Source: Paramoeba atlantica (Eukaryota > Protista > Discosea). Taken from it: a DNA stretch of 64,000 bases. The position numbers and the translations under genes were made by a program. The stretch spans positions 992,001 through 1,056,000 of the forward strand of contig CDRNVI010000002.1 in the NCBI GenBank assembly GCA_977017575.1, read 5' to 3'. Positions 49 to 60,167 of this stretch are shown one piece after another (positions within the stretch are counted from its first letter, which is position 1; each line of letters starts with the position of its first letter). Under the pieces are notes generated by a model. The model was not told the DNA's origin. It saw only the letters and a list, made by a program, of their open reading frames with translations, and searched no databases.

Positions 49-1164
49 AACGACGCACCACCTGATACATCCGGCGATGCACCTGAACCTGATGCTCCCT
101 ACGAAAATAAATATTCAGAGTTGTCTTTATGCGGTTTAACGCATCGCGCTCTCACCTTTCTAAAACAATTTTATCCCTTTGAAGAAATTTTTGCGAGCTT
201 TCTTTTTTTGCGGTGTGGGGGTAGCTACGACATTGTATCAGAACTCATATCCTTGAAATTCGGAACCGGTTGGTCTGAACGTTCTTGTTCTGACAAGATA
301 CCCGCGTTTTTTAAAAAACTGCATTCCGATATGAAGGATACATGGCTTTGTTTGGATTCCGATATTTTGCACCATGAATCAAACGCAGTTCTTCCTTTTT
401 GGGATAAGGACATAAAGGTGGTGATGGACACAGTGCCACTGTACGTTGATAGCTTGCCTCACTGCTATCAACCCAAATATGCTACACACGTCGTGAAAGC
501 GCTCGTAGCATCTACAATGTCTGGGTATGTTTGCTTCACAGCAGACACATTGTACTGTGGAGCCTCATCCGACGCCGTTATTCAGGACTGTAGTGGTATT
601 CTGGATTTTCTGGCACACAATCGTGTTCGCGCTCTTGCTGACGGGGGATTTTACGATGGTCTTACTGATAGATTAATAGTACCCCATTCTAAAGCCAAAA
701 TTTGGTGTTCGAAGCGCCCAAAATCTAAGTCTATGCAGAAACATCATGATTCAGAAGCAGATGGTAAAATGTGCTTCAATGAAAAGTTGGCTCACTTTAG
801 ATCGCGGGTCGAACACATTTTTTCTCGTTCGTGCTGTGGCAAATGGCTGGCTTTTAAGCAGTGGACTCGTAGTCCAGATTTTCTTTACTATGCTTTTTCG
901 TGCGCTCTCATGGTTCATAACATGGAAGTGTTTCATAAACATGGACCTCAAGGAAGATATCCACCTCTTACCCCTGAGAAAGTGGAAGCAGTTAAAAAGA
1001 AGATAATGGAGCACAAAGGACAATCTTCCAGATATGGAGTATCTGACAGTTCTACTATCACAGGTCCGATGGACAAATACACGTATCCTAAAAATCTTGA
1101 TGCGTATGTTTTTTTTCGTGAACAACAATCCCCCCACCAGCACTCAACCAATAACCCCCTATGA
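49..1164 (+). mobile_element. DDE transposase of PIF/Harbinger-ISL2EU (IS5-like, DDE_Tnp_4) type; 5' end lies upstream of window, probable frameshift near nt 50
   Basis: Motifs VVMDTVP, YQPKYATHVVKALVASTMSGYVCF, CGASSD, ALADGGF, FN..LAHFRSRVEHIF give a D-D-E triad in DDE_Tnp_4 order. Frame 1 is open from 49; frame 2 is open over nt 2-58. Confidence 0.8.
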
Positions 1165-1348
1165 TCATACACTCTACGCTCATATACAGTTGCCCCTCCT
1201 CGCTATACTTAGCTAGGTACGCTACTTATCAGAGAATCACTTGCCTCTATGTCGTCACGATTCTCCGGCGACGCTCGATTTTTGGGGCCACTGTGGGCCA
1301 CTGTGGGTCGTCTTGTGCCACTTAGTCCACTACGGGCCACCCGGGGAC

Positions 1349-1744
1349 TGCATTGGGTCCAATGAGTTCGAAGGAAGCTTGAATCTAATGCATCTGCCCA
1401 AAAATATGAGAGTACTGCACGCAGGTCATAACAATTTGAGTGGAAATGTCATTCTTTTACATTTGCCACCGATTATGAAGTCACTGTATCTATCTTATAA
1501 TAAATTCTCAGGCACCCTGGATTTGCAGCACTTACCATCGGAGTTTCAAGATCTTCGATTGAATGTAAATAATTTTTCCGGTCTTATATTCTTGGATGAC
1601 CTTCCTAAGGGCCTCAAAACATTATGGCTGTACGGCAACGAAGAACTGCAAGGAGAGATCGACGCAAGAAAGCTTCCTGAAACTTTGGCCAGCTTTTCCT
1701 ACAGCGATACAAAAATTGAAATTTTACCTACTCCTCAACAATAA
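1349..1744 (+). pseudogene. 5'-truncated 23-aa LRR family gene fragment
   Basis: Five LxxLxLxxNxFxGxLxLxxLP repeats start abruptly at CIGSNEF. The N-terminal W..C.W.GV.C cap seen in the other family members is absent. The upstream codons of ORF 1241 run through GGGCCACT repeats downstream of the transposase. Confidence 0.7.
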
Positions 1745-2127
1745 TTAGTATAAAATTTATACTCAATATTTCTACAATTACAGTACTCAATATTACGTCG
1801 CTTATACCGTCAAAGCATAATTTATGGCCTTGGGACATAAATGACATTTTATGAGTTGTGACCAAGGACGAATGCGTAGCACCTGGATCACTTTTGTGGT
1901 TTGGGTTGTATGGAAACTCACGGTGGAGCATAACCTGTGGTCATGGCTCTCATCGATTTTGTTTACCTTCTCTGGCTTTACGGTGACACAGAACCTGAAT
2001 TCGGATCTCTATACCAATAGGTACGTACCCGTATTGGTGGTAATCCGAATCGGCGACCTGTGCCGCACTCATGAAGATAACGAATATAGAACACCTAAGC
2101 TCAATCACTGAAAGAGATTGAGAGGGA

Positions 2128-2346
2128 CGCCGCGAAGCGGCGCTATATTTTTTGGGGGTTTTTTATTCCCATTTTCTCGAAAATGACTTTGTTCGTTCAA
2201 GAACACATCCCTTAAATACAGTCTGTAGAAATTTTGTAGAAACCATTTTTTTTTTGCATTTTAGACAAAATTTAGTATACCGTACCCACTTAGTATACCG
2301 TACCCACTTAGTATGCCTACTAGGTATACTATCCTGGAACATGGTT
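2128..2346. mobile_element. Partial MITE (right end), same family as 22823-23107
   Basis: Shares CGCCGCGAAGCGGCGC, TGCATTTTAGACAAAATTTAGTATACCGTACCCACTTAG and the TIR GGTATACTATCCTGGAACATGGTT followed by TA. Confidence 0.7.
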
Positions 2347-2573
2347 TACTATTCACAAAAAAATGACGAAAAGTTTGTGAATAATAAATGGGTCCCCCCT
2401 TTACTCTTCTGGTCAAAAATAGAGGAAAAGGAAAATCCAGAAAATGACATTTAATTCTGTCATTTTCAATTCCTTTCCCATTTTCCTTTATTTTTGATCA
2501 GGGTAGAGAAAGTCATACCTTTTGGTTCAATGAACCACGACTGAACCAACCTACAAGGCGTACCCCCCCTTCA

Positions 2574-6257: not shown

Positions 6258-6971
6258 ATGAACAGTACAACTGAAGCTGCACCGGCCTTTCATTCGTCCA
6301 GACGCGGAAAAGTTACAAAGAGTGCTTTGCCTCTAGAATATTCTCTTTCTCGTTTCATAGAAAAAGTAGAAAATCCGCATTCCTCGTGGAAGGCAGATAA
6401 CCGAGCATGTGAGTGGAAAGGAGTGAAATGCGATTTCGGAGGACATTTGCTTTGCTTGGCTTGGGCTAACTATGGCTTGCTTGGGACACTTCTCTGGCAT
6501 CATACTCCTCCGATACGAGGAAGCTTTTTTGTACATTGTAATTCTTTGCAAGAAAATGTGGATTTGAGTCAACTGGAAGATGCAACAGAGCTGTGCAATT
6601 TAAGTCACAACAAATTTCAAGGTATGATAGATTTTACGCAATTGCCATCAGGCTTGGATTCACTGTGGCTTTCATACAATGAATTCTCTGGAAAAGTAGA
6701 TCTTACAGCCTTGCCCACTGGACTTCGATTGTTATTTCTTCAAAATAACGTATTTTGTGGAACGCTAATTTTAAATTTTCTTCCAGGTAGCATGAAATTT
6801 GTTTCCCTTAGGAACAATCAATTCTCTGGTATACTGCATCTGACTTCCTTGCCCCAGAGTCTACGAAGGATGGATCTGAGTCAAAATTCGAAACTAAACG
6901 GTGAAATCGATAGGAATTTATTTTCTCCTGATCTCACAATAGTTAAAGAAGGAACGGGAATACTTTCTTGA
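6258..6971 (+). CDS. Leucine-rich repeat protein (23-aa LRR family)
   Basis: LPLEYSL..F..SW..ACEWKGVKC cap; repeats such as LDSLWLSYNEFSGKVDLTALP. Confidence 0.85.
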   Translation: MNSTTEAAPAFHSSRRGKVTKSALPLEYSLSRFIEKVENPHSSWKADNRACEWKGVKCDFGGHLLCLAWANYGLLGTLLWHHTPPIRGSFFVHCNSLQENVDLSQLEDATELCNLSHNKFQGMIDFTQLPSGLDSLWLSYNEFSGKVDLTALPTGLRLLFLQNNVFCGTLILNFLPGSMKFVSLRNNQFSGILHLTSLPQSLRRMDLSQNSKLNGEIDRNLFSPDLTIVKEGTGILS

Positions 6972-7598: not shown

Positions 7599-8237
7599 AG
7601 GGAAATATACACTTTATGTAAATAAATTAATTAATGGAGACAATGAAGTGTGCCACTTTTTTGGATGACACTGGATGACTAATTTTGTTGATACTCCAGC
7701 TTATCTATACCCTCTCACCTTTATAGTTCATTTGCCAGAACGAACGTTTGCCCGTTCTTCAGGAGAGCATCTGACTTCCGGCTAAGCTCTTTTTTTGATT
7801 CGCAGTTTGCTTTTCTTTCTATTTTTTTCTCTTTTCTAACACCCTTATTGCGCAGGAAATCCCTTTTATACTTTTCGGCTTTCAAAAATAACGAAGCGAT
7901 AGTCATGGTACGTCTCACTACAAGGTTCGTTTGTGCCTTCACTCCATGCTCATATCTGTCTTGGACGGCACTCGATCGCACTGGATGACAGTGAACAACT
8001 GCACATTGTCCAATTCAATGATCGTTTTAGCTTTTCTCTCACACGTTGAACTGGTTGAAGACCGTAAAGGTAGACGTAACAAGCGAAGCTCGTCTAGAAA
8101 AGTTCGAAAAACATGAAAAATGATCAGAAATTGATCAATTTTAGCAGAAATGTGATATTTATGCTACAAGCGACACTATTTAAATACGAAGTTTTTTGGG
8201 TTTTTATCAGCGCCACTTTAATTAAGGCAACTTTAAT

Positions 8238-9535
8238 TTTCTTTTTTAGGTTCTTCGTTAAACGCGGTGGTTGTTTTCAACTTAGAAGTCATTCATGCTG
8301 CGCGCTTCGCGTTGAAAACTACCACCGCGTTTAACGAAGAGCCTAAAAAAGAAACATCTCCAAAAGATCATGAATAATCTACTTTTTTTGGGGAAAAAGC
8401 TCGATTTTTCGGCAAAAATTGCGAAACTTTACACCAAATTTGGGCCTTTTTTGATGCCTTCCCATTAGGGGCAGGAGTCGATTCAGTCGAAAAAAACGTC
8501 GCATAATAAACCCCGCTCACGAAAAGTGACCCCCCTCTTTTTTTTCGTACAAATGTCCGTTTGAGCTGTTTTTTGTTGCATTTTGCAGATCTCAACACAA
8601 GGACTTTGCGCGTGCAGAAATGAGACAAAAAGAAACGAATACGCACAATTTAGAGAAGAATTACCATTTTGTCACTTTTTCGCCCTTCAATCTTATACAC
8701 TCCTTAAGTCGAGAATCAAAACTTAATACTGTTTTGTCGATCACTTTTTGAGTTAAAGAAGACCATGCTTTACATACACATCGGATAAGTGAAGGTTTGT
8801 CCGATGGGGTTTGTTCGTCTACCGCCTCTTGGACCATAGACCAGACGTTTTCTATGGGGGAAAGGTCGGGCGAGTTGGGGGGCCAGTTTCTTAGAACATC
8901 ACTCATTCAATTCTCAATATACTCTTTGGAGGCACGGGCAGTATGTGCCGTTGCCCAATCCTGTTGAAATACACTATTAGGGGGAAATCTACCTGTTTTA
9001 ATGTTTCTATGTACGTCTCACTTGTAATAGATGTGTCATTGTAGATGTCTCACTTGTAATAGATGGTCACAGGACTCAAAGTGTATTCCCCGCTAGATTT
9101 TTTTTCGTTCAGATATTTTTTGATTATCCTTCTAGAGACGTTAAAATCACGGGATAATTGTTTTATCGGAACACCTTCTGCCTGTCTCATCTTCAACAGA
9201 ACCTTACCACTATCCCTAAGCCCCCCTTTTGGGAGCCGATATGGTGATTTGGTCATTTTTGGAAAAAAAGTTGAAAAACCAATTATGTTTTTTGACTAAA
9301 TTTCAAAATTTTAAAATGAGCTAAAAACAGCGGGAACGTACAGATCTCGAAATTTTGAACGAAAAAGTGATATGATAACCCACCGACGCCCCCCTGTGCT
9401 AAAAATAAGGGGGGGTCACTTATTCGTGAGCGGGGGTTTTTATTACTGTGTTTCTCTTTATATTTTCACTGTTTTTGTTGACTTTTTTTTCAATAATCGA
9501 GGGTAGAGCGGTAGTTATACAACCACCGCAATAAG
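8238..9535 (-). mobile_element. Helitron2/Helentron-like non-autonomous element, copy A, interrupted by a Tc1-like element
   Basis: 5' palindrome at 9508-9529, 3' hairpin with about 44-bp arms at 8238-8354; homologous to copies at 57910-60167. Confidence 0.55.
8506..9443 (-). mobile_element. Internally deleted IS630/Tc1 element, DD35E type
   Basis: Imperfect TIRs ATAAA(AA)CCCC(C)GCTCACGAA..AGTGACCCCCC flanked by TA at 8504-8505 and 9444-9445. HTH-like N-terminus at 9256-9050. VFQQDWATAHTAR..(TGA)..WPPNSPDLSPIENVW has 35 residues between D and E. Confidence 0.85.
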
Positions 9536-9543
9536 TTGTTATA

Positions 9544-11264
9544 CTCCCCTTGTCAGAATAAAATACAAATCGATTTTTCGTTGTGGCAAAATCTACCCCA
9601 AAGAAACGGTGCCATTTATACTTTTCAAAAAACAAATCGATTTTTTTTGTGAAATATTTTTTTCCTGAATGCCGTCTGGTAGGCCGTTGTCTGCGAAACG
9701 AAAGAGTTCAATGACTCATTATGTTTCACAGGGTGGAAGGCCTTCCAATCGTGAGATTGAGCGGCGCGAGGAAGGGTGGAAAGAATTTGTGAGTAATAGC
9801 GGAGAATCTCATATAATGGCTCTTCCGAACATTGTAAGCGAATACATAGAAGAAGCGTCGAACTTGTTCTTCGAAGCCCAGAACTTTCTTTTCATGTCTT
9901 TGGAGGAAAAAATCCGTTCTGTGGCATGTGATGAAGAGTTTGTGGTGAAGATTGGTAGATGGTGTTGTCCAAGCAAAGAAGCAAGAAGACGCCTGGACTC
10001 CTTATTCTATGTTTCGTCGTTGGTTGGATTGCTTGAACATTGTCAACAAATCTTCCAAACGTACCATGAAATTGCTTATCCAGATGATTGGGAGGTTCAA
10101 GGAAAAAACATGATTCTTCGGATTGTCTTTATTGTTTCACATGAGCACAAGGGATCCCCACGGGAAGAACTTATTGTCAACGTGGATGAGACCGGCATTG
10201 CTTACAACAAGCTAGCACAAAGTGGGTTCTGTATGCAGGGTGAAAAACTTTCAAACATCGCAAACTCGGATAAGAGGAACGCTACACTTCTAGCATGTAT
10301 CGCACTATCAGGCTCTCTTCTTTCACCATTTGTAATTTGGAATGGAAAGCAAGGAAGCTCTCACGCATCAGTAAAAGAACATTCCCTATCAGTTCAGTAT
10401 CAAACTTCTAACCACTATACCACTGGAGCTATTCTTAAATACGTGGAAAAAAAATTGTTTCTCTATTATGAACGCCAAGTTGTCTTTTTGACTGAAAGAC
10501 CATTTCCTGTGCTAGTACTCCTCTGGGACTTGTTCGGTGCATACTTCAAATGAGACAAAGTTATCTTTCACTGGCCAGTGCTGTGTGGGGGGGAAGTATC
10601 ACTGGATACGCATCGTATATGTACCCGCTAGATGCACGGGCAAGCTTCAGCCGTGCGACGTCGGATTATTTAATCGACTAAAGTCGAAACTTTTGCATTT
10701 TCGCATTAAGTCGCTTCTTGAGTACTGCCGAAGTCAAACCCTACAAGGAAAAAGCATCGGAAGCAGCTCATCTATTGGCGGCAAAATATGTAAAAAAAGT
10801 TATTGGAATCACTAGACAATGTCTACCTGGTCTTAAAGGATCCTAAACATATTGAGGCCAATGTAAAAGCTTTCCACGACGTAGGTATATCCATTCAAGC
10901 GCTCACATCTCCCGAGAACATTGTTGAATCTATAAAAAGACAAAGCGTACTATTTAGTCTCAATTATACGACGAGCATCGTATCAGACGATGAAGTGCAA
11001 GAAATTGAAGTAGACGAATACGCACTAGACACGAAGTAAAAGGCAGATTTGTGGATGTATGCTTTTTCTGAATGTGAATGCTTTTTCTTTCTGGGCATTT
11101 ATACTTTTTCTCGGCGATTTATACTTTCTCATATTGATTCATCCTTTTTCTGCACGATTGATACTTGTTTGATCCATTTATACTTCTAAAATATAATATA
11201 AATAGAAATCACCAATTTCCTTTATATTTTATATTTACTGTATATTTTATTCTGGCAGGGGGAG
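9544..11264 (+). mobile_element. pogo/Tigger-type (DDE_1) transposon, both ends present, frameshifted transposase
   Basis: TIRs CTCCCC(T/C)TG(T/C)CAGAATAAAATA with TA at 9542-9543 and 11265-11266. Motifs NVDETG, KRNATLLAC..SG..LSPFVIW.GK, WDLFGA/H, PARCTGKLQPCDVG. ORFs 9669..10553, 10537..10815 and 10803..11039 are separated by frameshifts. Confidence 0.88.
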
Positions 11265-11266
11265 TA

Positions 11267-12318
11267 ACCCGTTTTATGAGGTAGAGATTTAGCGAAACGT
11301 TTCTTTTATGCGTTTTTAGATGTCCTCTCGCAGCATTGCTTTACAAAATTCAACGCGATTGTTACGCTCGGCCTCTGTTAGAAGAAGTGCGTTTTCTTTT
11401 GAGAGGAGTCTATATCCGTGGTAATATAAAAGGAGGGGTCTAATTTTTGTTTTGTGTTCCTCTATACTGGTATCCGGAATAGTATCACTGATTTCTCAGT
11501 TGCATGACTCCGTGACAATGGGTAACTCTATTCGGGGGATGGTTTCTTCAGTGCTCTCCTCGACGTCGGAACTTGAAACTTTTTCTTCCAATATGTTTAA
11601 TAGCTGTCCTTCATATAAAGCAGTGGAATCGGGTTGCTCCGTCTTCTCATTGCTATGGTATTCATCAAATCCGCGAGTAGAATCAGTAAAGTTTTCTATG
11701 GCGTGTTCTTGTTTGGAACTTTCAGACACACCTCGAAGTTCGGTGATTGCTTCGAAAGTCTCCTTATCGCTCCATTCCTCAGTATCACAAGTAGAAGAAC
11801 CAGAGAGATCATCGTCCGGATCCCAATCAAAATCATTTCCTTCACACACAGCAGTTATGTCTGAGGCGTCGAAATCGGAACTCGATGTTTCAGAAAGTGA
11901 GACTGTTTCGCAAGTGAGCACTTCTGCATCGTCTGATTCGCTATCCAAAAGTTTGAACGTGGAATCAATCATAAAAAATCAGAAAAAACAAAGGAGTATA
12001 AAAGGCAGACTATAGTGATATGGCGTAAATGGTCTAATTCGTGAAATTAGAAATATCAAAGCTGTAAATATGAAAGCATAAGTCGAAGAACCCGAAACGA
12101 CGAAACAAATCCGGGTATTTGATTCTCCGACCAAAAAATTAAGCGGTACGGCGGCATGTAGGTAATAAAATTAAAGATCACATTGTAGGAAAAAAGAAAC
12201 ACGAGCTAATAACAATTTTAAGCTAGTCACGACGACGTCATACGTAATCCACAAAAAACAGAAGACGAAAAGCTCTTTTGGCGCTCTCTAAATGTTACTA
12301 TATTCTGGGACGGAGGTG
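11267..12318 (-). mobile_element. 5' part of a mariner-like element with Stowaway-like TIR and acidic N-terminal transposase remnant, cut by the pogo insertion
   Basis: Minus-strand end TA|CACCTCCGTCCCAGAATATAG at 12320-12298 resembles Stowaway CTCCCTCCGTCCC. Reading ORF 11972..11496 through its TGA gives LLLTEAERNNRVEFCKAML, the LT..NK..RL.FC..ML motif that precedes the first catalytic D in mariner transposases. Confidence 0.55.
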
Positions 12319-12564
12319 TACCTATACTTTGATAAAATAACGTGACGGGTATGTGGTTTATTATAAATTATATTGTCGCTTTTTTCCGAAATGTGGTGAC
12401 GGATAACTACGGGGGTATAGTACTTGTATTTACAATTAACGTACTTGCAAATTGTGTTCTCACTGTGTTCGGTACTTTTCGATCAATATCACAGGCCAGC
12501 ATTATTAAGTTTTTTAACAAACGCTGAAAACAATTTTTTTCTGCATAGTATCTATTAGTCTTCA

Positions 12565-13938: not shown

Positions 13939-14333
13939 CGAATCAATGGAAATTATCATTGGTGCAATGGACGTGGTACACGCAGCGCAAAACTTCGAGA
14001 AAAGATTTGAGCGGTGTCGTATACTAGAATTAAATCCGGATGCCAATGCTATCTCTAGAACTGCGAATTTTTTTCGGACATAATACGTAGAAGTAGACTC
14101 GTTGAAACCATGATATCTTCATCTATCACCTCTATTTTAGAATCTATTCTTGGAATACATTCTATTCTTCTAGTGTCTCTTCTTCGAATATAAAAATTTA
14201 TTAGGATAGAATTTCTAACCTACCTGTATGTATCTGCATATTTCATAATCTATTAAACATTGCTCGAAAATCTCCTCCCTAGTCGACCCGAATTTACTTT
14301 TTCCCTCACCCCACCCTCCTACCCCGGACAGTG

Positions 14334-16037: not shown

Positions 16038-16524
16038 ACAACATTCACGCATGGTTTGTGTTTGCGAATGTTTGTTTCTGTTTTTTTCTAAATCATTAAT
16101 TGTGTTGTAGAGTAAAATCACGAAGTAGATCAGAAGTCGGTGTGTAAGTTAATAGGCCTTTTGGTGGTATATTTTTTTACTAAATGCTACTCTGATTTAG
16201 AAATGTTTGATTTTTTATCTAGCCCTTAGTACACTAGAACCCCTTTTCTCTTATCATGCGTTGTAGATGCGATTCACTTTACTATGAGATACTCAGAAAA
16301 GGAACTCTTAAATATGTATCATATTTCGTATTCACATTGACAAACTTTGTATAAATTCGTAACGATAAGAATCGGGCGGCTTTTATCTTTGTGTCACGGT
16401 TTGCACATCATTTTTCTTTTGTTGGTCAACGGCAAAGCTTTTGTATTTTCATATTTTTGTTCAAAGATTAAGCCGAATTTTACAGGAGATATTCTTTTTA
16501 TCTTTCCGTGTTTTTTGCTACCTG

Positions 16525-17922: not shown

Positions 17923-18644
17923 GGAGATGAATAAATAGAGGAAACGCTAGCTCGTAAAAAAGGTAATCTCTTTTTTTGGGGGGTCATGTCAGGCGTCCTT
18001 TTTGCGGTATCTTGTCTTGAATGTAAGTTTCGGTGCATTATGGTGCATGCAGTGCGTATCATACACTGCAATGTACACTGCAACGGTGTAACTGCAAACT
18101 ATTTGTTATTCACTCGCTAGGAGTAAACCTCTATACTAGAGGGAGGGCGTGGTACTTCACATCCCGTGGCCCACGATTCGCTGGTTTTATAGAGATGAAA
18201 ACGACATGACCCCTTTCGTTATGACGATGTAACACTTTCAAGAGCATTTTTCGATCTTCGACAATGGCATGTACGGCTGTCGCACCGTTCTGGGCATCCA
18301 ACTTATTCAGCTTCAATCACCTCGTACACACACATTGTACATTTTACCATTTACCATGACGATTACATCTCCGATGAAAACAACTTTAATTGTTTCTCAA
18401 TTCGAATTGTATAGATTTAGTGTCTCTACCTAACAAAATTATCTATTTTACAAATTCTGATAATATTTTCACAACGTCCAGCAAACAAAACAAACCACAA
18501 AGAAATCCTTTTTTCCACACTACCACCCATCCACCCCCAGCCATGCTCCGTTCGGCCGTCCCCACACGGTGAACCTGACCCCACAACACCCAAAAACACC
18601 CACCCCAACCCAAAAACACCCCTTTCCCCCCTTTTCTCCTCTCC

Positions 18645-22716: not shown

Positions 22717-22822
22717 TCAAACTGCTACAAAAGTTTGACGGGTTGAATATCCGAGTATCGTAATATCTGTTGAAGAAAATGCTTTTTCACTTCAGTAAGC
22801 TTTGAACTCATTTTATGTAGTA

Positions 22823-23107
22823 AACCATGTTCCAGGATAGTATACCCATGCCCACTTAGTATGCCTACCCCCCCCTTCCCAGCAACAGGAGCGTGAGACG
22901 TGCCTTTTTTAGAAGCGCCAGAGCATTTTTCTAGCAATCACACGGTATTAAATCGCATTTTAAGGTCAAGACACCATTTTTCTAGCAACTACAGATGAGA
23001 AACGCGCCGCGAAGCGGCGCGAAAATTTTTTTCTGCATTTTAGACAAAATTTAGTATACCGTACCCACTTAGTATACCTACTAGGTATACTATCCTGGAA
23101 CATGGTT
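22823..23107. mobile_element. Complete 285-bp MITE
   Basis: 24-bp TIR AACCATGTTCCAGGATAGTATACC at both ends; TAGTA on both flanks (22818-22822 and 23108-23112). Confidence 0.85.
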
Positions 23108-23706
23108 TAGTACCAAACTGTGCCGTTTCTTCAGAACTTCAGAAGCTACTACTCCCCCTGTCATTAATAATGATAATCTTAAAAAAGATATCGTTCTATG
23201 TGGTGAAGACTCTTAAAAAATTATCAACTTATTTTCATGCACGCAAGATTTTCTTAAAAAAAAGTTTTTTGAACTAAAAAACTACTGGTAAGGTTTCAAA
23301 ACCGGCCCAAATTCGGGTTAAAATTTATCATTTTTGACCTGAAAATCGTGTTTTTTGGCGAAAACTATGTACTACCCCTGCCATTAATGATAATGATAAT
23401 AATAATCTCAAAAATATTATCATTATCATTATTAATGACTTTTTTTGCACTATTTTCGTTATTTTTCGGAATTTTTATTGTACCTGTAGCTAGTTATTGT
23501 ACCGGGGAGGTACATTAAAACGGACGGGGGTTTACTTTGATTTATTAGTATTAAGTTATTAGTATAAGTTTCACACATGATTCTATGTTTTTTATAGGAT
23601 AATCAACTTTTTTCTCGACGATACGCCCATAACATCTTTATAAGGCATTATTTTCTTATCATTGTATTAGTTTTTTTTTCTTGTGCTAACACGCTACATC
23701 GGTAGA

Positions 23707-24929: not shown

Positions 24930-26276
<1,347 letters not shown>

Positions 26277-46536: not shown

Positions 46537-46795
46537 CATTTCTATCACGCTTGTAGCATGTCGGGGAAGCAGGTCACATCATGTGAATCCCACGTAGAGT
46601 TTTCTATAGCGCTTCCCTTGTTTTAAACTCTTCTCGAAACAGAATCCGTGATATTTAAGAATGGGGTAATGGTCAATAGCATTTGTAACCCGGTGAACGG
46701 TATATTATTCAATAACGCTATATTATTCAAATTACACTATATTATTCAAATTAACACTATATTATTCAAATTAACACTATATTATTCAAATTAAC

Positions 46796-48301
46796 CAGGG
46801 GTCCCTAAAAATTTATAGATATAGTTTATAGTATTGAGGGAGATACTCCCTCGCTACCGTAGGTAAAATTCGTCGTGCCCGATTTGTGGCCCGATTTCGT
46901 GCCCGATATCGTTTCAGGTGAGTTTTCGAAAAAATTATTTACAAAGACGTATGAATCGAATTTAATGACAAGATTACTAGTTTTTCAACAACTCCGATGG
47001 GTACCCCCTGCCCCCCCCCACGTCCCCACCAGGATGATCATAGCAATTTTTGAAAGTTTTGGTAATACACCTACAAAGTCCAAACTTTACCTGGAAGTGT
47101 GTGACACGCAAGGCCGTAGAGGAAGGAGGAGGCGCAAGGCAAAAAGGCAGAAGGCGGAGCCTTCTGTCTTTTTGCCGCGGCGACGACGACTTCCTCGCGT
47201 GGGAAGAAGTAAAGCGCCATAGGGAGCATGTTCGGATGGCTATGTAATCCAGGCTAAAGTGGACGAGGGAGATACTAAAGGCACCTTTGGAAAACCACCT
47301 CGAAACTGGAACGGTATCTCCCGGTTTGTAGAGCATTCTGATGTGGCAAAAGGGTCTTTAACGGGTGATACCGTTCCAGTTTCGAGGTGGTTTTCCAAAG
47401 GTGCCTTTAGTATCTCCCTCGTCCACTTTAGCCTGGATTTCAAAAAAAAATATAGTACTATAAATGCCATTTATAGCACTATAAATACTTTAAAGTGTTT
47501 GAGAAACTTTATTTTTAAGGGAGGCTAAAAGGGGTTCAAGAAGCCCAAAATTGTATTGGATGTTGTAAGAGGTGCTCATCTCGGGGGCCTGGCGTTCGGC
47601 TCGCAGTTCCGGGGTTGAAAACCCTTTTCTGAGATGGCAGCCTCAGGGAGACTCCATGTTGAGGGTGTCAAAAGTTTGCCGAGAACTAGTTGGTCGGCGT
47701 CTGTACCATCAGTGAGATGGCAGTGTCAGGGAAGACCACGAGAAGGTCCCGACCTTGCTCCCCATGTTCAGGGTGTCAAAAGCTTAGTAAGTTGTGGATC
47801 GTACTTTCCCCAGGGACACAGCGCAGTCCCTTCGTAAGAAGCCACTTAAGGTTTGGGTCCTGCAAAGCAGCATTGTTAACCCCATGATTGATTTTCCATA
47901 GGAGGTGTCGCTCAAATTCCTGTAAGTGTGGTTTCACGGTGAAGGCATCCAAAGATCCTCGTTCCACACGTTTTTGACGCTGAGTGCTTCGCATCCACTC
48001 CTCAAAATTTAGGTCATGACTTTTAGTTCAAGTGCGTGAGGGCCGAGGAGTAGGAGACTCGAATCCCCTTTTATCAAAAAAAGGGTTTCTTCACGCCTGC
48101 TTCGCAGACTTGGCATTCGAAATTATGCGTCACCAATTTTAACAAAGTGTGAAACAACAAACTCCGCCTGGCTTTCGTCGTTCCGTCGCATATTTGGCAT
48201 TTCTGAGAAACAAAAAAAATAAAGTTTTATATATAGTATTTAAAAGTTTATAGTACTATAAAAGTACTATAATAAAGGTTTTAAAGTTTTAGGGACCCCT
48301 G
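46796..48301 (-). mobile_element. Non-autonomous hAT-like element
   Basis: Perfect 15-bp TIR CAGGGGTCCCTAAAA; 8-bp TSD AAATTAAC (46788-46795, 48302-48309). Minus-strand remnants SHFVKIGD..FECQVC (BED-like) and LLWKINHG..LQDPNLKWLL..VPGESTIHNLL (hAT DNA-binding-like). Confidence 0.8.
47246..47439. repeat. Perfect 73-bp inverted repeat with 48-nt spacer
   Basis: 47246-47318 is the exact reverse complement of 47367-47439. Confidence 0.95.
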
Positions 48302-48614
48302 AAATTAACACTATATTATTCAAATAACGCTATATTATTCGAATAACGCTATATTATTCAAACAACGCTATATTATTCAAATAGAGCCGCATAACACTGT
48401 ATTATTCAAATAACATTATATTATTCAAATTCCGATTTGAATAATATACCGTTCCCCGGGTTATATTGCGGTGTTTTTCATGCGTTTTTGCTATTTCGTA
48501 TCTTTTTATCAGTAACATAGTCACAGCATCTATCTATAGTACCGGTACGTACAGATCTACGTGGTATTTTTAAGTAAAACTTAAACAAGATGAAAACATA
48601 AACGAGAATCCACC

Positions 48615-52729: not shown

Positions 52730-53422
52730 ATGACGTCATCTGCATTGACGTTCTTCCATCAAAACAGAAAAGCAAAACTATTTTTTACGTTACCTTTCTT
52801 CTTAATCCGAATGCACATTTTTTGTCCCACTTGCCGAGTGTACAATGCTCATGGCGCTGACGAGAGCTCTACTTCACCTTTGATCCGACCGGGACGTATT
52901 CGTGGAGCCGCCCTACCGGCGCAATATGCCTTGCACCTGTTTATCCGGAACATCTCCAACCCCCATCCCACGTGGAGGGCCGATGCTCCGACTTCATCGT
53001 GGCACGGAGTTGAAGTCGACTTTAACACAGAATCTGTACGTAGCCTCACTTGGATCAATTTAGGCTTACAGGGAATGCTTCCCTGGTGTGACTGCCCACC
53101 CGCACTGGAAAAGCTGAATTTTTGTCGCAATGAGCTCAGCGGCTCCGTTGATTTTGCTGAACTTCCCGCCAAACTGCGCTTGTTTGCGATTTCCATTAAT
53201 ATGTTTAGCGGGGAGCTCTGTTTTGAGGGAATACCGCCCTCAATAAAGGTATTACAACTGAGTTCAAACCGGTTTTATGGAAAGGTTGATCTTAGTCCTC
53301 TGCTTGGGAGACCGATTCGCCTTGATCTCAGTCAAAATTTTCTTACGGATATTTTTCCTAAAGTATCCTTCTCCGGTATAACAATTGGAGTACAATGTAA
53401 TGAACAGATACATAATTTCTGA
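52730..53422 (+). CDS. LRR family protein
   Basis: LPAQYAL.LF..I..TW..SSWHGV cap, 4 LRRs; alternative ATG near 52811. Confidence 0.83.
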   Translation: MTSSALTFFHQNRKAKLFFTLPFFLIRMHIFCPTCRVYNAHGADESSTSPLIRPGRIRGAALPAQYALHLFIRNISNPHPTWRADAPTSSWHGVEVDFNTESVRSLTWINLGLQGMLPWCDCPPALEKLNFCRNELSGSVDFAELPAKLRLFAISINMFSGELCFEGIPPSIKVLQLSSNRFYGKVDLSPLLGRPIRLDLSQNFLTDIFPKVSFSGITIGVQCNEQIHNF

Positions 53423-53999
53423 TTTCCGGTATCTACTTCTTTTGTATGATATACATACTATACTGCTTCTGTATGACTTTGGGAATTACCAGAAGAAAAG
53501 GATCACTGAAATTGAGTGACTGAACCCTATATATGTATGCACTGAAAATGGCCGTCTATCCTCCTGAATGCAGTCACACTATTTAGCAGTATGGTTTCCA
53601 TAATTTTAATCAAGAGGGGAGGCAACTGGCTATTCTGCCGTATTCTGCCATATTCTGCCGATCGCTGTCCTATTCGGCCTCAGAGGTCAAAACATCTTAT
53701 CGAATCCAAAAAAAAATTGCGGTTCACTTTCGAATTCTGCCATATTCTGCCAATCACCACAGACGCGTTGCCCCCCCTCTAAGTTCCGCACTGTACGTGT
53801 ATCTAATTTACAGTGGTCGTCACTATTCTCAGAATCCGTAATTGAACATTGAAAGGATTTTTTGATTCTCATTCTCATTTTCGCGACTATTCTCATTTTC
53901 GTGTTGATTTTGCCGTTGAACGTTGACAAGAAATAGAAAAGAAGTAGAAAAAAATCTTTGGGTCACCTGCACTCAAACTGTACCCAAAAATACGTTTTT

Positions 54000-54873
54000 T
54001 CAAAACAAATGTTCCCTTCGACCAAATTTCCTTTTAAAGTCGTCCTGAGCACTGTCCACTGTGCGTGCGCTGGCCAAATGAAGTAGAATACAAGCTTGTA
54101 ATGTCGCACGATCCTGAGTCTTTACCAATTTCCAGTGGGTAAGATCCATCATTCTTCCTTCTTGCTCCGTAACTGTTACGAACCAGTAGCCTGTTACGCG
54201 CTGACGCCTCCCACGGTTGTACTTACATTTTCCAATAAACGTTTCGTCAACCTGCATCCGGGCAAATTTTTAGTTTGAAGTCTGCTCCTGATGCAGGGCT
54301 GCGTTGCCAAGCGCTAGAATAATTTTCTGCACCACCTTCCGTTGCACTCCACGGTTCTGGTAAATCTGCCCAGTACACAAATGGTTTGCGGCGTCTGCCC
54401 AAAGAAGTTCGTGTCAAGAGGATCAGAGAGAATTTGCTAATTCGGGCCCGACACAGGTTTCTCTCATTCGGAAGACGGTGTTGGCAAACCATCATGTCGG
54501 GCTTTCCTGGCACATATTGGAGATAGTCCGCCCCATGGAAGTAGCACGCGGCATTTTCAAACAGGTCATGTGATCTCATCCAGGTTACGGCATCCTCGCC
54601 TTGCGGAACACAGCCAATGCTTCGCCACCCCCGAACACAAACAAATCTGGTACACCCCGAGCAAAGTCGTCTCGCTCGCAAATTTCGCCATACTCTATTT
54701 TGAACAACGGGTTGAGTACGAGGTTTCGGATTATTTCCATACAATGATGTCTCACGTGGAACATGCTCTATGACACGATCAAACGCCTCAAGGAACATCA
54801 TTATGAGTCGATCGGCCTCATTAATTTCAGGAGAGTGTCGGTCGTGTTCATTTTGGTCTTCTGCCGGGTACAA
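54000..54873 (-). mobile_element. Merlin/IS1595 (ISXO2-like) transposase remnant, frameshifted and C-terminally truncated
   Basis: QVDETFIGKCKYNRGR..W..DRATLQACI matches the ISXO2 (V/I)DE..GKRKYNRGR motif; the upstream ORF 54873..54247 joins it by a frameshift near 54255. Confidence 0.78.
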
Positions 54874-55099
54874 TAGGAGTCCCTAGGTATAATAAACCGG
54901 ACTGTGGTTTACAAATTTTTGCCCAGATTGCACAACAGGGTCCCTTTTGATCTATTCTCATTCTCATTTTCAAGGCCCTTTTTGAGTAGAACGTTGACAC
55001 GATAATTTGTCACTCTTGAGAGGGTCATTCTCATTTTCGTGACTGTCATATTGGTGACGATCACTGTAGCTGTTTTTAAAATATACAGGGGTGGGCATT

Positions 55100-55808
55100 C
55101 ATGCGTGATACTTCGCCGGTAACAACCGTAAAAGTAGTGGGAACGGTGTGGTGTGTGTACGCCACGAAAGTAGTACCCTTAGCGTACACCCCCGCCAAAA
55201 AGTATTGTAATTTATTAGTATCGACCAAAAATTCGTGGTCGATACTAATAAATACAATACTTTTTGTCGATTTCCACGGGTTGCCACTTGCCTCGAAAAA
55301 GTTGCACTTTATCATATCGGATCTGTAAAGTATACTGAAGCACAAAAACAGGTCGTACCATAAGAACCCAAGTAACTATCACAAGAACTAAATAACTGGT
55401 GGTGCGAGGGAAAAGTGTAGCACTGTCAGTTCTTGGAAACATCAAACCATGGAATTAGCAATTTAATTGTTTTGATTACTCAACGCTAAAATAGTGTGAG
55501 AGAGGAACCATTCCGAGCCTGCTCAAATCTTGCCTTAGCTGTCCGCGACATTCCAAGTGTTTCTTTACGACGAGTTTCTTATCTTTCAATGGCTTCCCTG
55601 CGTGCCCCAATTTCCTGCGTTCCTGGTCAAAACTCAAAAAAATGATCGATACTAATAAATACATTACTTTTTGTGTCGGTCATTTTTGTGGAGAATACTT
55701 TTTGGCGGGGGTGTACTCCCGGTAGCACGTATGCACATTTCAAATCCCCTTGAGCCCGCTTGGGCCTTGACGAGGTGAAGAGAAACCATGCATTACACAT
55801 CACTTTCC
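55100..55808. repeat. Copy of the ~230/257-bp repeat split by a MITE
   Basis: 55100-55186 plus 55714-55808 rebuild the unit across a TA. Confidence 0.85.
55187..55713. mobile_element. 527-bp Tc1/mariner-type MITE
   Basis: Perfect 20-bp TIR CACCCCCGCCAAAAAGTATT; TA TSD (55185-55186, 55714-55715); internal 30-bp-arm hairpin at 55196-55266. Confidence 0.88.
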
Positions 55809-56087: not shown

Positions 56088-56576
56088 ATCGGTTCTTACG
56101 ACCTTTGCGAAGTCACGCCTCTTCAGAGATGAAATATTCCTGAACTTCCATGCGTGATACTTCGCCGGTAACAACCGTAAAAGTAGTGGAAACGGTGTGG
56201 TATGCGTACGCCACGAAAGAAGTACGCTTAGCGTACTCCCGGTACCACGTATGCACATTCCAAATCCCCTTGAGCCTCTTGGGCCCTGACGAGGTGAAGA
56301 GAAACCATGCATTACATATCTTCTATACAAATATTATTTGTCTCATCGGTTCTTACGACCTTTACGAAGTCACGCCGCTTCAGAGATGAAATATTCCTGA
56401 ACTTCCATGCGTGATACTTCGCCGGTAACAACCGTAAAAGTAGTGGAAACGGTGTGGTGTGTGTACGTCACGAAAGTAGTACGCTTAGTCTACTCCCGGT
56501 ACCGCGTATGCACATTCCAAATCCCCTTGAGCCTCTTGGGCCTTGACGAGGTGAAGAGAAACCATGCATTACACAT
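56088..56576. repeat. Two tandem copies (257-bp period) of the unclassified repeat
   Basis: Unit starts ATCGGTTCTTACG at 56088 and 56345. Confidence 0.92.
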
Positions 56577-56650
56577 CACTTTCCATATTCGTTTCCGTCT
56601 AGTGTAATAATCTTTTAGAATATACCACATTCCGCTTTAACATTTCTGTA

Positions 56651-56980: not shown

Positions 56981-57550
56981 TATTCTATTAGAATCATCAA
57001 GAAGAGGTAAGGCGCCAGTACATCTTGTAAAGTTCCATTTTCTGTCGAAAACCGTTCCGCTTCTCCATAGGGTGTCCTAACGTATGATGTTAAACCCTCG
57101 TATGCTCAAGGTTACTTTAGTAAGACTTTCTGGTATATGAAAAGCTCTTACAGCATCTTTTATTGCCGAGAAGGTGACAGAGGGAAACGCTTGTTTAAAG
57201 TCGACGAACTTAATGGCGACGCCTTTGCCTCTTGTGGCTTTGGTGGCTATTTCCATGAAGGTTGCTTGGGCGCCTGCAGTGGATCTATCTTAGTGTATGC
57301 ACTCTAAAACCATCCTCTTCATTATTTTCACAACCTGGTTGACAATGCATACTGGTCTCCAGTTTGAGAGCTCGTTCAGATTGCCCTTCTTCGGGGGTGG
57401 GACTTGTAGAATAGTTTTCCATTTCTCCACAGCAACTCCGGTGCTCATTACGTCGTTCATAATATTTAGCAACGTACCCAGTAAAGATTCACTTTGAGCC
57501 AGAGCTCGAAGAGCCTCTATAGGGATATCATCAGACCCAGACGCCTTTCC
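56981..57550 (-). pseudogene. Non-LTR retrotransposon reverse transcriptase remnant (RTE-like)
   Basis: KASGSDDIPIE, PKKGNL..LSNWRPVC, RSTAGAQ, FVDFKQAFPSV, VRTPYGE..F..GTLQ.DVLAPYLF; stops and a frameshift; YADD not reached. Confidence 0.85.
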
Positions 57551-57909
57551 AGACCCCCTCTACCGATGAGCCACCACGCGAGATTCTTAACACTGCTCCC
57601 CTACATGGTCCTCCAGATTTTCGATACGCATGTACGCTGACGGAGTAATTTAATAAAGTTCAAGAACGCCAAGAAAGTGAAAAAAAAGAATTCGATGCAA
57701 TGGGCGAAGAGTAATATACTTAACATTCTTGTAGCTACTTAACATTCCCCACGGAATGTTAAGCCGGAGTGGTTTAATATTTTGTTCCTTTCTTTCTGAT
57801 GAGTCTTACGCTTCTCAGGCAACCCTCTTCTGAATAACCTGAAGAAAATGAGCACCGAACCCATATATGCACCTGAAAAATATATATTTCATACCAGCTT
57901 AACATTTCT

Positions 57910-58526
57910 CTTATTGCGGTGGTTGTATAACTACCGCTCTACCCTCGATTATTGAAAAAAGGTGAACAAAAACAGTGAAAATATAAAGAGGAACACAGTA
58001 ATATAATAGAAGAAAAAAATAAAAAAGGGGGCTCCGGTGGTCCAAAACTGAAAAAAAGAATTCAAAAAAATGGGGGGGGGTCCAAGGGTGGGGCATAAGT
58101 CGCGAAATTTTTATCGAATTTTTTGCTTTTCAAAATCGAGCGCAGGGAAGTGGTAGAGTATGCCGCGGCGATGACTTTCCACCCCCCCTCCAGGGGGTAC
58201 TCCCCCTGGTACGCGCGAGAGGGGTCCGACAAGGTCAAAACTTCCGAAATTTTTGGGATGACCCAAAAAAATATTTTTGACCCAAAACAAAATAAAAATA
58301 TTCTTTTTCCAGAATCGACTTCTAAAAAGTATTTTAAGAGTTTAGGACCTCAGCTACCGTTCTGCGACGTTTTTTTCGACAGATTCGTAATTTTTGCCGA
58401 AAAATCGAGCTTTTTCCCCGAAAAAAGTAGATTTTTCATGATCTTTGGGAGATATTTCTTTTTTAGGCTCTTCGTTAAACGCGGTGGTAGTTTTCAACGG
58501 GAAGCGCACAGCATGAGTGACTTCTG
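57910..58526 (+). mobile_element. Helitron2-like element copy B (3' hairpin truncated by MITE end)
   Basis: Starts CTTATTGCGGTGGTTGTATAACTACCGC; ends in the hairpin loop at GACTTCT(G). Confidence 0.6.
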
Positions 58527-58630
58527 ACCCGGGGAACGGCATATTATTCAATAACGCTATATTATTCAAATTACACTATATTATTCAAATTAACACTATA
58601 TTATTCAAATTAACACTATATAATTCAAAT
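58527..58630. mobile_element. Left end of the minisatellite MITE (family of 46688-48461)
   Basis: ACCCGGGGAACGGCATATTATTCAA plus about 4 units of the 20-bp repeat. Confidence 0.8.
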
Positions 58631-59170
58631 TGCGGTGGTTGTATAACTACCGCTCTACACTCGATTATTGAAAAAAAGTGAACAAAAACAGTTAAAATAT
58701 AAAGAGCAACACAGTAATATAATAAAGAAAAAAAATATAAAAGCGGGCTCCGGTGGTCCAAAACTGAAAAAAAAAATTAAATAAAATGGGGGGTCCATGG
58801 GGGGGGACATACATGTACATCGCGAATTTTCTTTTCGAATTTTTTGCTTTTCCAAATCCAGGGGGTCATGGTCGTGCAAATCTTTTCGAAAAAATTATTT
58901 TTCGAAACAAAACCGCAGAAGGGGTAGTCGGGGTCTTGGCGCGCATTTTTCACCCCCCTACCCGGGGGTGACCCCCCCGCTTATCCGCAGGACGGGTCCG
59001 CCAAGTTCGGATTTTTTCGCAAAAATTTTTTTGAAAAAAATTTCAACTTGGCGAAAAAAATGGCAAAAAAACTATTTTTCCAAAATTGTTTCGCCTATTG
59101 TATTTTGATAGCTTGGGACCTATACTAGCTTTCTCCACAATTGTTTTCGCCAGATATCCCTTATTCAAGA
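58630..59170 (+). mobile_element. Helitron2-like element copy C (diverged, 3' truncated)
   Basis: 5' palindrome at 58632, then colinear homology to copy B up to about 59150. Confidence 0.55.
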
Positions 59171-59487
59171 CGTGGTATGCCTGCTAAATTGGCCCATTTT
59201 TGACTAAAAAAGGTGAAAAAGTATTTTTCGGGCCCCAAGGGACCTTTTTGTGTGGAAAGAATGGTGTGGTTGGAGTCGTATTCTCCACCCAATACGTTCG
59301 GTAGGTTTTTATTCATGCCTACGAGTAATTTCCCAAGCGCAAAAAAAAATATTTTTACAAATTTCTTTTAACGTGATAATAGTGCCAAAACATAGATCTC
59401 TGCGAGAGCTCTCGAATGCGCTATTATTTTCCAAAATTGCGCAAAGATTGCTAATTTTAGACCTCCCCAGCATCTGATTTGCACCCC

Positions 59488-60167
59488 TGTATAACTACCG
59501 CTCTACCCTCGATTATTGAAAAAAGTGAACAAAAACAGTGAAAATATTAAGAGGAACACAGTAATATAATAGAAGAAAAATGTGTATTAAAGGGGACCCC
59601 GGTGGTCCAAAACTGAAAAATTGAAAAAATGAGGGGCATACGTCACGAAACCTTTTTCGAACTTTTTGCTTTTCAAAATCGAGTGCGGGGAAGTGGTAGA
59701 GTATGCCGCGGGGATAATTTTCCACCCCCCCACCTGGGGGTGACCCCCCCCCCTGGTACGCGCAGGAAGGGTCCGACAAGTTCGAAAATTCTGAAATTTT
59801 TGGGGTGACCCCAAAAAAACAAATTTGACCAAAAACAAAATAAAAACAATATTTTTCCAAAAATCGACTCATAAAACGTATTTTGAGAGTTTGGTACCTC
59901 AGCTACCATTCTACGACGTTTTTTTCGAGAGATTCGCCTCCTGCCCCTACTGGTAAGGTAGCAAACGTGGCCCAAATTTGAGTTACAATTTCGCAATTTT
60001 CGCCGAAAAATCGAGCTTTTTCACCCAAAATAGATTATTCATGATCTTTTGGCGATTTTTCTTGTTTAGGCTCTTCGTTAAACGCGGAGGTAGTTTTCAA
60101 CGCGAAACGCGCAGCATGAGTGACTTCTAAGTTGAAAACAACCACCACGTTTAACGAAGAGCCTAAA
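59488..60167 (+). mobile_element. Helitron2-like element copy D (5' clipped, full 3' hairpin)
   Basis: Begins mid-palindrome TGTATAACTACCGC; hairpin at 60065-60167. Confidence 0.6.

Follow-up and report, generated by a model that had tools for sequence, protein, structure and literature searches.

Kinetoplastids are the textbook case of genomes that carry retrotransposons only. The trypanosomatid mobilome is made up of the retrotransposons INGI, CRE, VIPER and TATE, and no class II element has been confirmed in 57 trypanosomatid genomes (PMC12278014). In the papers searched, the only class II element reported from kinetoplastids is Merlin, in Bodo saltans and Perkinsela, with few copies that have neither inverted ends nor duplications and were judged inactive (PMC8101967); an earlier note on the present DNA had also described trypanosomatids as lacking DNA transposons and Merlin as the one reported from Bodo/Perkinsela. 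Diplonemids, the sister group, have DNA transposon genes (PMC10161547).

We analysed a stretch of 64,000 nucleotides (the window) on contig C2 of an assembly deposited under Paramoeba atlantica, and compared its elements (Table 1) with the remainder of the genome. From its sequence, the window is best explained, and very probably so, as part of a nuclear chromosome of a kinetoplastid-type protist whose genome harbours class II elements in great number and variety, part of them active. The kinds of element are ordinary and known; what is unexpected is their kinetoplastid-type host. Merlin of Bodo saltans and Perkinsela (PMC8101967) belongs to the same superfamily (IS1595-like DDE) as the window copy, which is likewise decayed and without ends, whereas Merlin here is accompanied by at least five other lineages and has at least 130 genomic matches and many open frames. 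Class I elements are present as they are in trypanosomatids (reverse-transcriptase fragments at window positions 57080-57559; a retroelement on contig C12), and the difference lies in class II, of which there are hundreds here.

Host chromosome, second copy and genome-wide counts

Five Tc-38 (PF20054) genes, scoring 76-141 bits, place the host of the window in Kinetoplastea. Alongside them lie GAPDH, polyprenyl synthase and LRR genes, nearly all genes of the array stand on one strand, and the retroelement on C12 is headed by a spliced-leader-like GATACAGTTTCTGTAC. The Tc-38 genes, the one-strand array and the spliced-leader-like start bear out the earlier reading of this DNA as a kinetoplastid chromosome; taken alone, the spliced-leader-like motif may also be compatible with a diplonemid-like identity. 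Between and inside the host genes lie copies of five DDE cut-and-paste superfamilies, Helitron-linked non-coding repeats and MITEs.

Contig C12 represents a second copy of the window region (~99% identical, ~1% divergent) and has the transposon-to-gene junctions of the window in common with it. Comparison of the two yields exact empty sites for the 2.7-kb Harbinger element and the 527-bp MITE of the window and for a Harbinger-type element present on C12 only; the empty sites are base-exact, show canonical duplications and lie within LRR coding sequence. Two copies at ~99% identity with exact empty sites indicate that the insertions are recent and exclude mis-assembly. Short-read contigs from four runs, all of one study that is probably also the source of the assembly, span the pogo junctions (X1, X2) and extend into a Tc-38 gene (X1, X2).

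Every lineage of the window is multi-copy in the genome, with 26 to >600 matches and many open frames: (i) DDE_Tnp_4 (117 matches), (ii) DDE_3 (676 candidates), (iii) DDE_1 (126 candidates), (iv) DDE_Tnp_IS1595 (130 matches, of which many have an open frame 300-450 codons long) and (v) the hAT dimerisation domain (26 matches). Helitron_like_N has 27 matches genome-wide, among them a frame of 2965 aa, and none in the window, and IS30-type transposases (124 matches) represent a seventh lineage beyond the window's six. The earlier note had listed seven lineages for the window itself, six of which stand (Harbinger, Tc1, pogo-like, hAT, Merlin and Helitron-linked repeats), and mariner is not confirmed. 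The high-numbered contigs C143-C242 look foreign, with identical short DDE_Tnp_4 frames and the sole MULE match.

Table 1 Features located in the window (positions are those of the window unless a contig is given)
Feature	Position	Strand	Basis
PIF/Harbinger element, right part (1360 bp of 2707 bp)	1..1360	+	DDE_Tnp_4 match; C12 empty site
PIF/Harbinger element, whole	C2:990654-993360 (begins 1346 bp before window)	+	Ends at window 1360
Harbinger transposase frame	49-1161	+	DDE_Tnp_4, 40.6 bits, E 2.6e-10 (cut-off 24.8)
Solitary hairpin module of Helitron-associated repeat family, 44-nt arms	8235..8358	.	Inverted repeat I2
Tc1/IS630 remnant, DD35E family	8505..9441	-	tblastn to L011; DDE_3 fragment; inverted ends
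95-bp very high-copy module	9438..9542	-	blastn to many unrelated loci
Pogo-like element (DDE_1, DDxD), 1721 bp, frameshifted	9544..11264	+	Inverted repeat I15; DDE_1 fragment
297-bp MITE, 30-nt inverted ends	22817..23113	.	Inverted repeat I10, 97% complementary
~264-bp MITE, 20-bp tandem repeats between 25-nt inverted ends	46688..48461	.	Inverted repeat I11
hAT remnant	46796..48301	-	tblastn to L029; ends and duplication read directly
602-bp non-coding insert within hAT remnant	46836..47437	+	Gap against C12; hairpin I1
Merlin (IS1595-like) transposase remnant	54057..54798	-	tblastn to L001
527-bp MITE, perfect 20-nt ends CACCCCCGCCAAAAAGTATT	55187..55713	.	Inverted repeat I14; TA duplication
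Head-to-tail array of Helitron-associated units, terminal hairpin with 37-nt arms	57910..60167	+	Units match RepHel flanks

Cut-and-paste elements and MITEs

The Harbinger transposase frame shares 98.7% amino-acid identity with a 396-aa frame at another genomic locus (L021), relative to which it has an N-terminal frameshift, and for this reason the window copy is probably not autonomous. Upstream of the transposase are two frames (147 and 148 aa) for which Pfam gave no match, and a second gene of the Myb/SANT-like kind was not recognised. The ends of the element read GGACCC.../...GGGTCC, with the target duplication AAT at 1361-1363, and the empty site on C12 reads GGAGTAC-AAT-GAGTTCG. A second copy of 98.3% DNA identity has the same terminus followed by AAT and then a different flank, and the C12-only element, for which the window provides the empty site, carries an AAT duplication as well, giving three cases in which AAT is the target. 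Named ISL2EU/Harbinger-like in the earlier note, the element belongs to PIF/Harbinger by its DDE_Tnp_4 domain and departs from ISL2EU by a duplication of 3 bp, not 2 bp. It resembles PIF/Harbinger of plants, animals and protists in DDE_Tnp_4, short inverted ends, the 3-bp A/T-rich duplication and derived MITEs; unlike those known elements, it has a host whose genes are transcribed in long arrays on one strand.

The Tc1/IS630 remnant is 86% identical in amino acids to an intact frame (L011; tblastn, E 1e-59), against which an internal deletion of ~430 bp is seen, and it contains a stop codon; its DDE_3 fragment scores 26.4 bits. Its inverted ends of 49 nt show 76% complementarity and are flanked by TA on both sides. 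The 35-residue D-to-E spacing was counted in an intact relative (L012; DDE_3, 62.5 bits).

The neighbouring pogo-like element has 24-nt inverted ends CTCCCC[T/C]TG[T/C]CAGAATAAAATA, again with TA on both sides, and 34 matches in the genome, including a 701-aa frame (L045). By itself the window piece reaches only 18.9 bits for DDE_1, below the cut-off of 22, and L045 reaches 35.9 bits; the motif LQPCD, with D as third catalytic residue, is present in both. Similarity of a paralogous copy (L034) to the region begins at 9540. A mariner lineage with a Stowaway-like TIR, as proposed earlier, was not confirmed: the CTCCCC end is that of the pogo-like element, and mariner PF01359 (DD34D) has no candidate genome-wide, a result of limited weight since control genomes are equally without match. 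The Tc1 and pogo-like copies share TA duplications, DDE_3/DDE_1 and an HTH N-terminus with the described Tc1/mariner-pogo group (DD34E Tc1, DD35E 'Traveler'-type, pogo DDxD) and its Stowaway-like MITEs, which the short TA-flanked MITEs here resemble. They differ in two respects: a Stowaway-like end goes with mariner in plants but, as CTCCCC, with a pogo-like element here, and canonical mariner was not found in this genome.

Only the N-terminal ~166 codons of the hAT transposase are kept in the window, with 4 stops and 53.5% identity to a 653-aa frame (L029; tblastn, E 5e-43). Its ends are CAGGGGTCCCTAAAA, given also as CAGGGGTCCC, and it is flanked by the 8-bp duplication AAATTAAC, whose identity could be due to chance because it is located within a 20-bp repeat array. 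Dimer_Tnp_hAT is found in L029 and five other genomic frames (n = 6; 22.5-30.3 bits, cut-off 21.4). The Merlin remnant is 62% identical to a 384-aa frame (L001; tblastn, E 2.7e-40) that matches DDE_Tnp_IS1595 at 53.8 bits; it is frameshifted and its C-terminal ~140 codons are missing. Neither inverted ends, sought within 53000-55100, nor an 8-9-bp duplication was found for it, and other genomic Merlin copies bear inverted ends of 48-71 nt with indistinct flanking duplications. The earlier description of many intact TIRs and TSDs holds for Harbinger, pogo-like, hAT, Tc1 (TA on both sides) and a TA-flanked MITE, and fails for Merlin.

Inspection of the flanks of the 297-bp MITE revealed no clear duplication. 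The ~264-bp MITE is interrupted by the hAT insertion, has TA on both sides and shows no match to six IS30-type loci. The 527-bp MITE is absent on C12, where the empty site reads GCG-TA-CTCCCGG, and the genome contains nine near-full-length copies of it plus dozens of partial matches (102 match rows), with one full-length copy at 99% identity.

Helitron-associated repeats

Helitron2/Helentron elements have non-autonomous derivatives of the HINE/DINE-1 type (Thomas and Pritham). Tandem units matching those of the window array directly precede the RepHel frame in at least two autonomous copies, one on C43 and one on C41. An array unit plus hairpin also lies downstream of the C43 frame, the 2965-aa frame, which scores 76 bits for Helitron_like_N and 88 bits for PIF1. 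The solitary hairpin of the window matches hairpins just upstream and downstream of this frame, and C12 has 127 extra bases at the hairpin site. The 95-bp module is identical to the starts of array units at 57912, 58631 and 59488, and its summed contig depth is ~500-1400 times that of neighbouring bins (three runs). The array includes a piece of the 20-bp-repeat MITE at 58528-58630, and the number of units differs between the window and C12; it would have formed by rolling-circle read-through or unequal exchange. Inside the hAT remnant, the 602-bp insert is absent on C12, has no duplication and carries a 5′ tip GAGGGAGATACT complementary to a site in its terminal hairpin (81-nt arms); it has nucleotide matches of 80-97% in assembly ERZ24900291.

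Judged by adjacency and shared sequence rather than by defined termini, the arrays and hairpins of the window are assigned to Helitron elements, to which they would belong or on which they would ride. The Helitron2-like family of the earlier note is upheld as far as these repeats adjoin RepHel frames on C43 and C41; the Rep frame is not in the window. Giant Rep and PIF1-helicase frames, non-coding units with a long terminal hairpin and no duplication, tandem head-to-tail arrays, and a 5′ tip of the 602-bp insert complementary to a subterminal 3′ site are shared with Helitron2/Helentron. In contrast to these elements, the 2965-aa frame showed no endonuclease domain, and units are also found as solitary hairpins and 95-bp modules.

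Age, activity and origin of the class II set

The heterozygous Harbinger and MITE insertions would be recent and would have been mobilised in trans by transposases that intact copies at other loci encode; Tc1, hAT and Merlin, whose window copies are decayed, would have inserted there earlier. A reading of all copies as long-dead remnants or domesticated transposase genes, comparable to the Merlin relics and with no recent mobility, is very improbable. The window copies of Tc1, hAT, Merlin and the pogo-like element do contain stops, frameshifts or deletions, and Merlin lacks ends, but the heterozygous insertions show perfect ends and duplications, DNA identity amounts to 98-99% among Harbinger copies and 96-99% among MITE copies, and transposase frames without stops number in the hundreds across the genome. 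An origin of the transposon stretches from host, prey or contaminant DNA mis-joined to kinetoplastid genes, of which the earlier note had named chimeric host/symbiont junctions as one outcome that would overturn its claim, has a negligible probability: although contigs C143-C242 have a foreign appearance that would fit it, the same junctions are found on C2 and on C12, two contigs ~1% apart that differ by transposon indels, the base-exact empty sites lie inside coding sequence, the pogo junctions are crossed by short-read contigs that continue into the Tc-38 gene, and the families are distributed over dozens of large contigs.

Recent repeated horizontal transfer, for example from the amoeba host of an endosymbiotic kinetoplastid, is unlikely. 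DNA transposons are capable of such transfer, and one Tc1 relative is found in the protist Anaeramoeba (30% identity). However, in its size of 45.7 Mb and its large LRR families the genome differs from that of Perkinsela (~9.5 Mb), and no close named donor emerges for the two transposases searched, with only four relatives of the Harbinger transposase at E<=1e-10 and at most 32% identity between Tc1 and any named protein; the endosymbiont and amoeba donor suggested earlier are unsupported. Each superfamily further contains deeply diverged subfamilies (DD34E and DD35E Tc1, several hAT and several Merlin subfamilies), which require time or very many transfers. The lack of class II elements in trypanosomatids (PMC12278014) would be in line with transfer, but the sister group of diplonemids carries DNA transposon genes too (PMC10161547). 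Related non-coding repeats occur in one other assembly. The deep diversification within the genome fits long residence, and the most likely origin would be long residence in free-living kinetoplastids and loss in trypanosomatids rather than recent transfer from a host.

Whether free-living kinetoplastids in general have retained a rich class II mobilome that is active to this day, with at least seven transposase lineages including the IS30-type, is a proposition that we consider evenly balanced on these sequences. Hundreds of copies from six or seven DNA transposon superfamilies alter the retrotransposon-only view of kinetoplastids, and some of the heterozygous insertions disrupt LRR genes. 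The timing and cause of class II loss in trypanosomatids become directly testable, and the genome can serve as a natural system in which to study how transposons are controlled where transcription runs in long polycistrons. If a rich active mobilome is true of free-living kinetoplastids, trypanosomatids would have lost all their class II elements secondarily, and native cut-and-paste elements would be functional in a polycistronic, trans-splicing genome, making them candidate genetic tools and a model of transposon control.

Class II lineages in the window

We classified the transposons by fetching intact genomic copies of each superfamily and aligning the frames of these copies to the window with tblastn, because Pfam matches to the window fragments were generally weak or absent (the Merlin, reverse-transcriptase-like and array frames matched no profile). 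Profile matches and tblastn bear out six class II lineages (PIF/Harbinger, Tc1, pogo-like, hAT, Merlin and Helitron-associated), the minimum that the earlier note had claimed; the six are real, and they are ordinary members of known superfamilies. Genome-wide, we obtained 117 matches for DDE_Tnp_4, 676 first-look candidates for DDE_3, 126 candidates for DDE_1, 130 matches for DDE_Tnp_IS1595, 27 for Helitron_like_N, 124 for the IS30-type profile NF033563 (best, 253 bits) and, at the default threshold, 26 for the hAT dimerisation domain, for which the first genome search at E ≤ 1e-8 gave none. Full-length open frames are present in many of these matches. MULE was rejected as a further lineage of this genome, its sole match sitting on a foreign-looking contig. 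The high-numbered contigs C143–C242 hold this match and many identical short DDE_Tnp_4 frames, and may derive from a co-assembled organism.

Transposons, repeats and selected genes (window coordinates unless C12 is given)
Feature	Position	Characteristics
PIF/Harbinger element	1346 bp before the window to 1360	2707 bp; AAT duplicated; ends GGACCC.../...GGGTCC
PIF/Harbinger frame	49–1161	DDE_Tnp_4, E 2.6e-10; 98.7% identity to 396-aa frame on C20
LRR gene	6258–6971	intact in window
Harbinger-type element, C12 only	inside LRR gene 6258–6971	1045 bp; AAT duplication; ends GGTGAGTCT...
Leader-headed insert, C12 only	C12:1117340–1117952 (locus L037), matching window 6737	613 bp; starts ATAGATACAGTTTCTGTACC
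Hairpin module	8235–8358	
Extra bases in hairpin module, C12	C12:1120553–1120680 (at window 8281)	127 bases, including small palindrome TTAATTAACGTAA...TTACGTTAATTAA
Tc1 remnant	8505–9441	49-nt inverted ends; TA on both sides; a stop codon; ~430-bp internal deletion
Tc1 stretch	8664–9256 (−)	86% identity to intact genomic copy, E 1e-59 (tblastn)
95-bp module	9438–9542, 57912–58006, 58631–58725, 59488–59573	starts TTGCGGTGGTTGTATAACTACCGC
Pogo-like element	9544–11264	24-nt ends starting CTCCCC; TA flanks
Tc-38-domain paralogues (five)	14331–28136	76–141 bits
20-bp-repeat MITE	46688–48461	almost wholly direct 20-bp repeats (TAACACTATATTATTCAAAT) between 25-nt inverted ends
hAT remnant	46796–48301	ends CAGGGGTCCC; 8-bp repeat AAATTAAC on both sides
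Hairpin-ended insert	46836–47437	602 bp
Merlin stretch	54057–54798 (−)	62% identity to 384-aa frame, E 2.7e-40
Inverted pair	54884–54913 / 60217–60246	30 nt; 87% complementary; 5.3 kb apart
527-bp MITE	55187–55713	
Tandem repeat	56144–56604	~257 bp; unit number unlike that on C12
Two open frames (class I)	57080–57559 (−)	look like non-LTR reverse transcriptase (motifs by eye; no Pfam match)
Helitron-type array	57910–60167	
Shortened 20-bp-repeat MITE	58528–58630	in loop of array hairpin

The labels that the earlier note had attached to individual elements fared differently. "DD35E" is correct for the window Tc1, because 35 residues separate the second D from the E in its intact relatives; another genomic Tc1 family has 34. 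"ISL2EU" does not hold, because the Harbinger duplication is 3 bp. The proposed mariner with a Stowaway-like TIR is not confirmed: the PF01359 profile yielded no candidate in the whole genome, Stowaway-type end patterns occur at chance level, and the Stowaway-like end is that of the pogo-like element. The frames of this element match 34 genomic places, one of which is a 701-aa frame with the motif LQPCD that scores 35.9 bits against DDE_1 (cut-off 22).

The hAT remnant keeps the first ~166 codons, at 53.5% identity to a 653-aa frame (E 5e-43, tblastn) that, like five further genomic frames, carries the dimerisation domain above cut-off; a PDB sequence search with a hAT frame gave no match. The window copy of Merlin is shortened, and its ends were looked for and not found; its 384-aa genomic relative scores 53.8 bits against DDE_Tnp_IS1595. 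Two further Merlin copies in the genome showed no clear duplication. The inverted pair abuts the Merlin frame, and between its arms lie a MITE, the tandem repeat, the fragments of reverse transcriptase and the Helitron-type array; the pair shows no duplication, and no link to Merlin or another family was found.

No Rep or helicase coding sequence was found in the window. The array units and the hairpin module match sequence beside frames with Rep and PIF1-type helicase (RepHel) elsewhere in the genome: array-unit sequence stands in tandem directly upstream of giant RepHel frames on contigs C43 and C41, with 5′ regions that are 95.5% alike. It recurs downstream of the one on C43 (2965 aa, with Helitron_like_N and PIF1), where it ends in the hairpin. 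The copy of the 95-bp module at 9438–9542 has a summed depth in Logan short-read contigs about 500–1400x that of its neighbours; at many loci the module adjoins copies of Tc1, Harbinger and hAT, and it may favour transposon ends as targets. The 527-bp MITE recurs across the genome in 102 match rows: nine copies are near full length, dozens of matches are partial, and one full-length copy is 99% identical. The 20-bp-repeat MITE was considered as an IS30-type derivative and rejected, since none of six IS30 loci matches it in sequence.

The matching region on contig C12

Paired matches in the family searches pointed to homology between C2, the contig holding the window (C2:992001–1056000), and C12. 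We aligned C12:1100001–1190000 to the window and found that, transposon indels aside, the two are collinear and about 99% identical. The Harbinger element is missing on C12, where the empty site reads GGAGTAC-AAT-GAGTTCG; the site is within the coding sequence of an LRR gene, one allele of which is therefore disrupted. A separate copy on contig C20 has the identical terminus followed by AAT, with an unrelated flank. Also missing on C12 are the 527-bp MITE, with an exact TA duplication, and the hairpin-ended insert, for which no duplication was seen, and the number of array units differs between the copies. The 613-bp insert found on C12 is assigned to a leader-headed retroelement because its start is spliced-leader-like. 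On the evidence of the two sequences, the collinear copy with its exact empty sites excludes the chimeric host/symbiont mis-assembly that the earlier note had weighed against its own reading, and the comparison shows recent transposon movement.

Further support came from Logan contigs of four sequencing runs of one study, covering 9000–15000. In two runs (X1 and X2), contigs span the junction at the right of the pogo-like element, contigs starting at 9507–9508 cross its left end, and contigs extend from 12214–12234 into a Tc-38 gene. This support is weaker than the two-allele comparison because the source of the assembly is probably among these runs. In a third run (X3), loose contig ends carrying ATAGATACAGTTTCTGTACC at 12525 and 14282 suggest strain-specific insertions.

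Host lineage and origin of the elements

The host is called kinetoplastid-type because of the Tc-38 (kinetoplastid) family, a one-strand gene array, in which the + strand carries nearly all long open frames of the window, and a retroelement on C12 that starts with GATACAGTTTCTGTAC, which we take to be the conserved core of spliced leaders in kinetoplastids (and diplonemids). The spliced-leader motif is absent from two loci examined in related ENA contigs. The Tc-38/ArdC-N cluster of five paralogues is broken up by an LRR gene and GAPDH; other genes of the window encode a polyprenyl synthase, a SpoU methylase, an RF-1 protein and many LRR proteins, and G+C is 47–58% in gene-rich parts versus about 39–40% in the stretches between them. 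A search with the window GAPDH gave mostly bacterial-type matches, the only near-identical one being a metagenome protein; the closest named kinetoplastid GAPDH is that of Neobodo (66% identity). Searching a protein atlas with Tc-38 and PDB with the polyprenyl synthase brought nothing informative on the host.

Horizontal acquisition from an amoeba host of an endosymbiont, as the earlier note had entertained, is without support: the genome is large (45.7 Mb in 248 contigs), no close named donor emerged, and an ENA assembly with related transposases, ERZ24900291, is probably a relative. At E ≤ 1e-10, a search of 5.8 billion proteins gave the Harbinger transposase only four relatives, and the two that were traced both lie in ERZ24900291; for Tc1, the closest named relatives are from a pseudoscorpion and Anaeramoeba, at 30–32% identity. 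ERZ24900291 carries Tc1 and Harbinger relatives at 51–54% amino acid identity (loci L058 and L059), and because the 602-bp hairpin-ended repeat is found there too, at 80–97% nucleotide identity, we take this assembly as probably a close relative of the host, not a donor. Deeply diverged subfamilies occur within the genome in each superfamily, and DNA transposon genes are also present in diplonemids (PMC10161547); as far as such comparisons can tell, both favour long residence with loss in trypanosomatids, a loss proposed before for Merlin (PMC12278014).

The first and only report of DNA transposons in kinetoplastids, Lopes et al. 2021 (PMC8101967), described Merlin from B. saltans and Perkinsela; these copies lack both ends and duplications and were judged inactive. 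No class II element turned up in 57 trypanosomatids surveyed in 2025 (PMC12278014). In the literature searched, with most subscription journals outside its scope, we found nothing cataloguing Harbinger, Tc1, pogo, hAT or Helitron in kinetoplastids, and hence no sign that these superfamilies were already catalogued there, the other objection foreseen in the earlier note. The element superfamilies themselves are already known; what appears to be new here is the host lineage, the diversity of the elements and the signs of their current activity.
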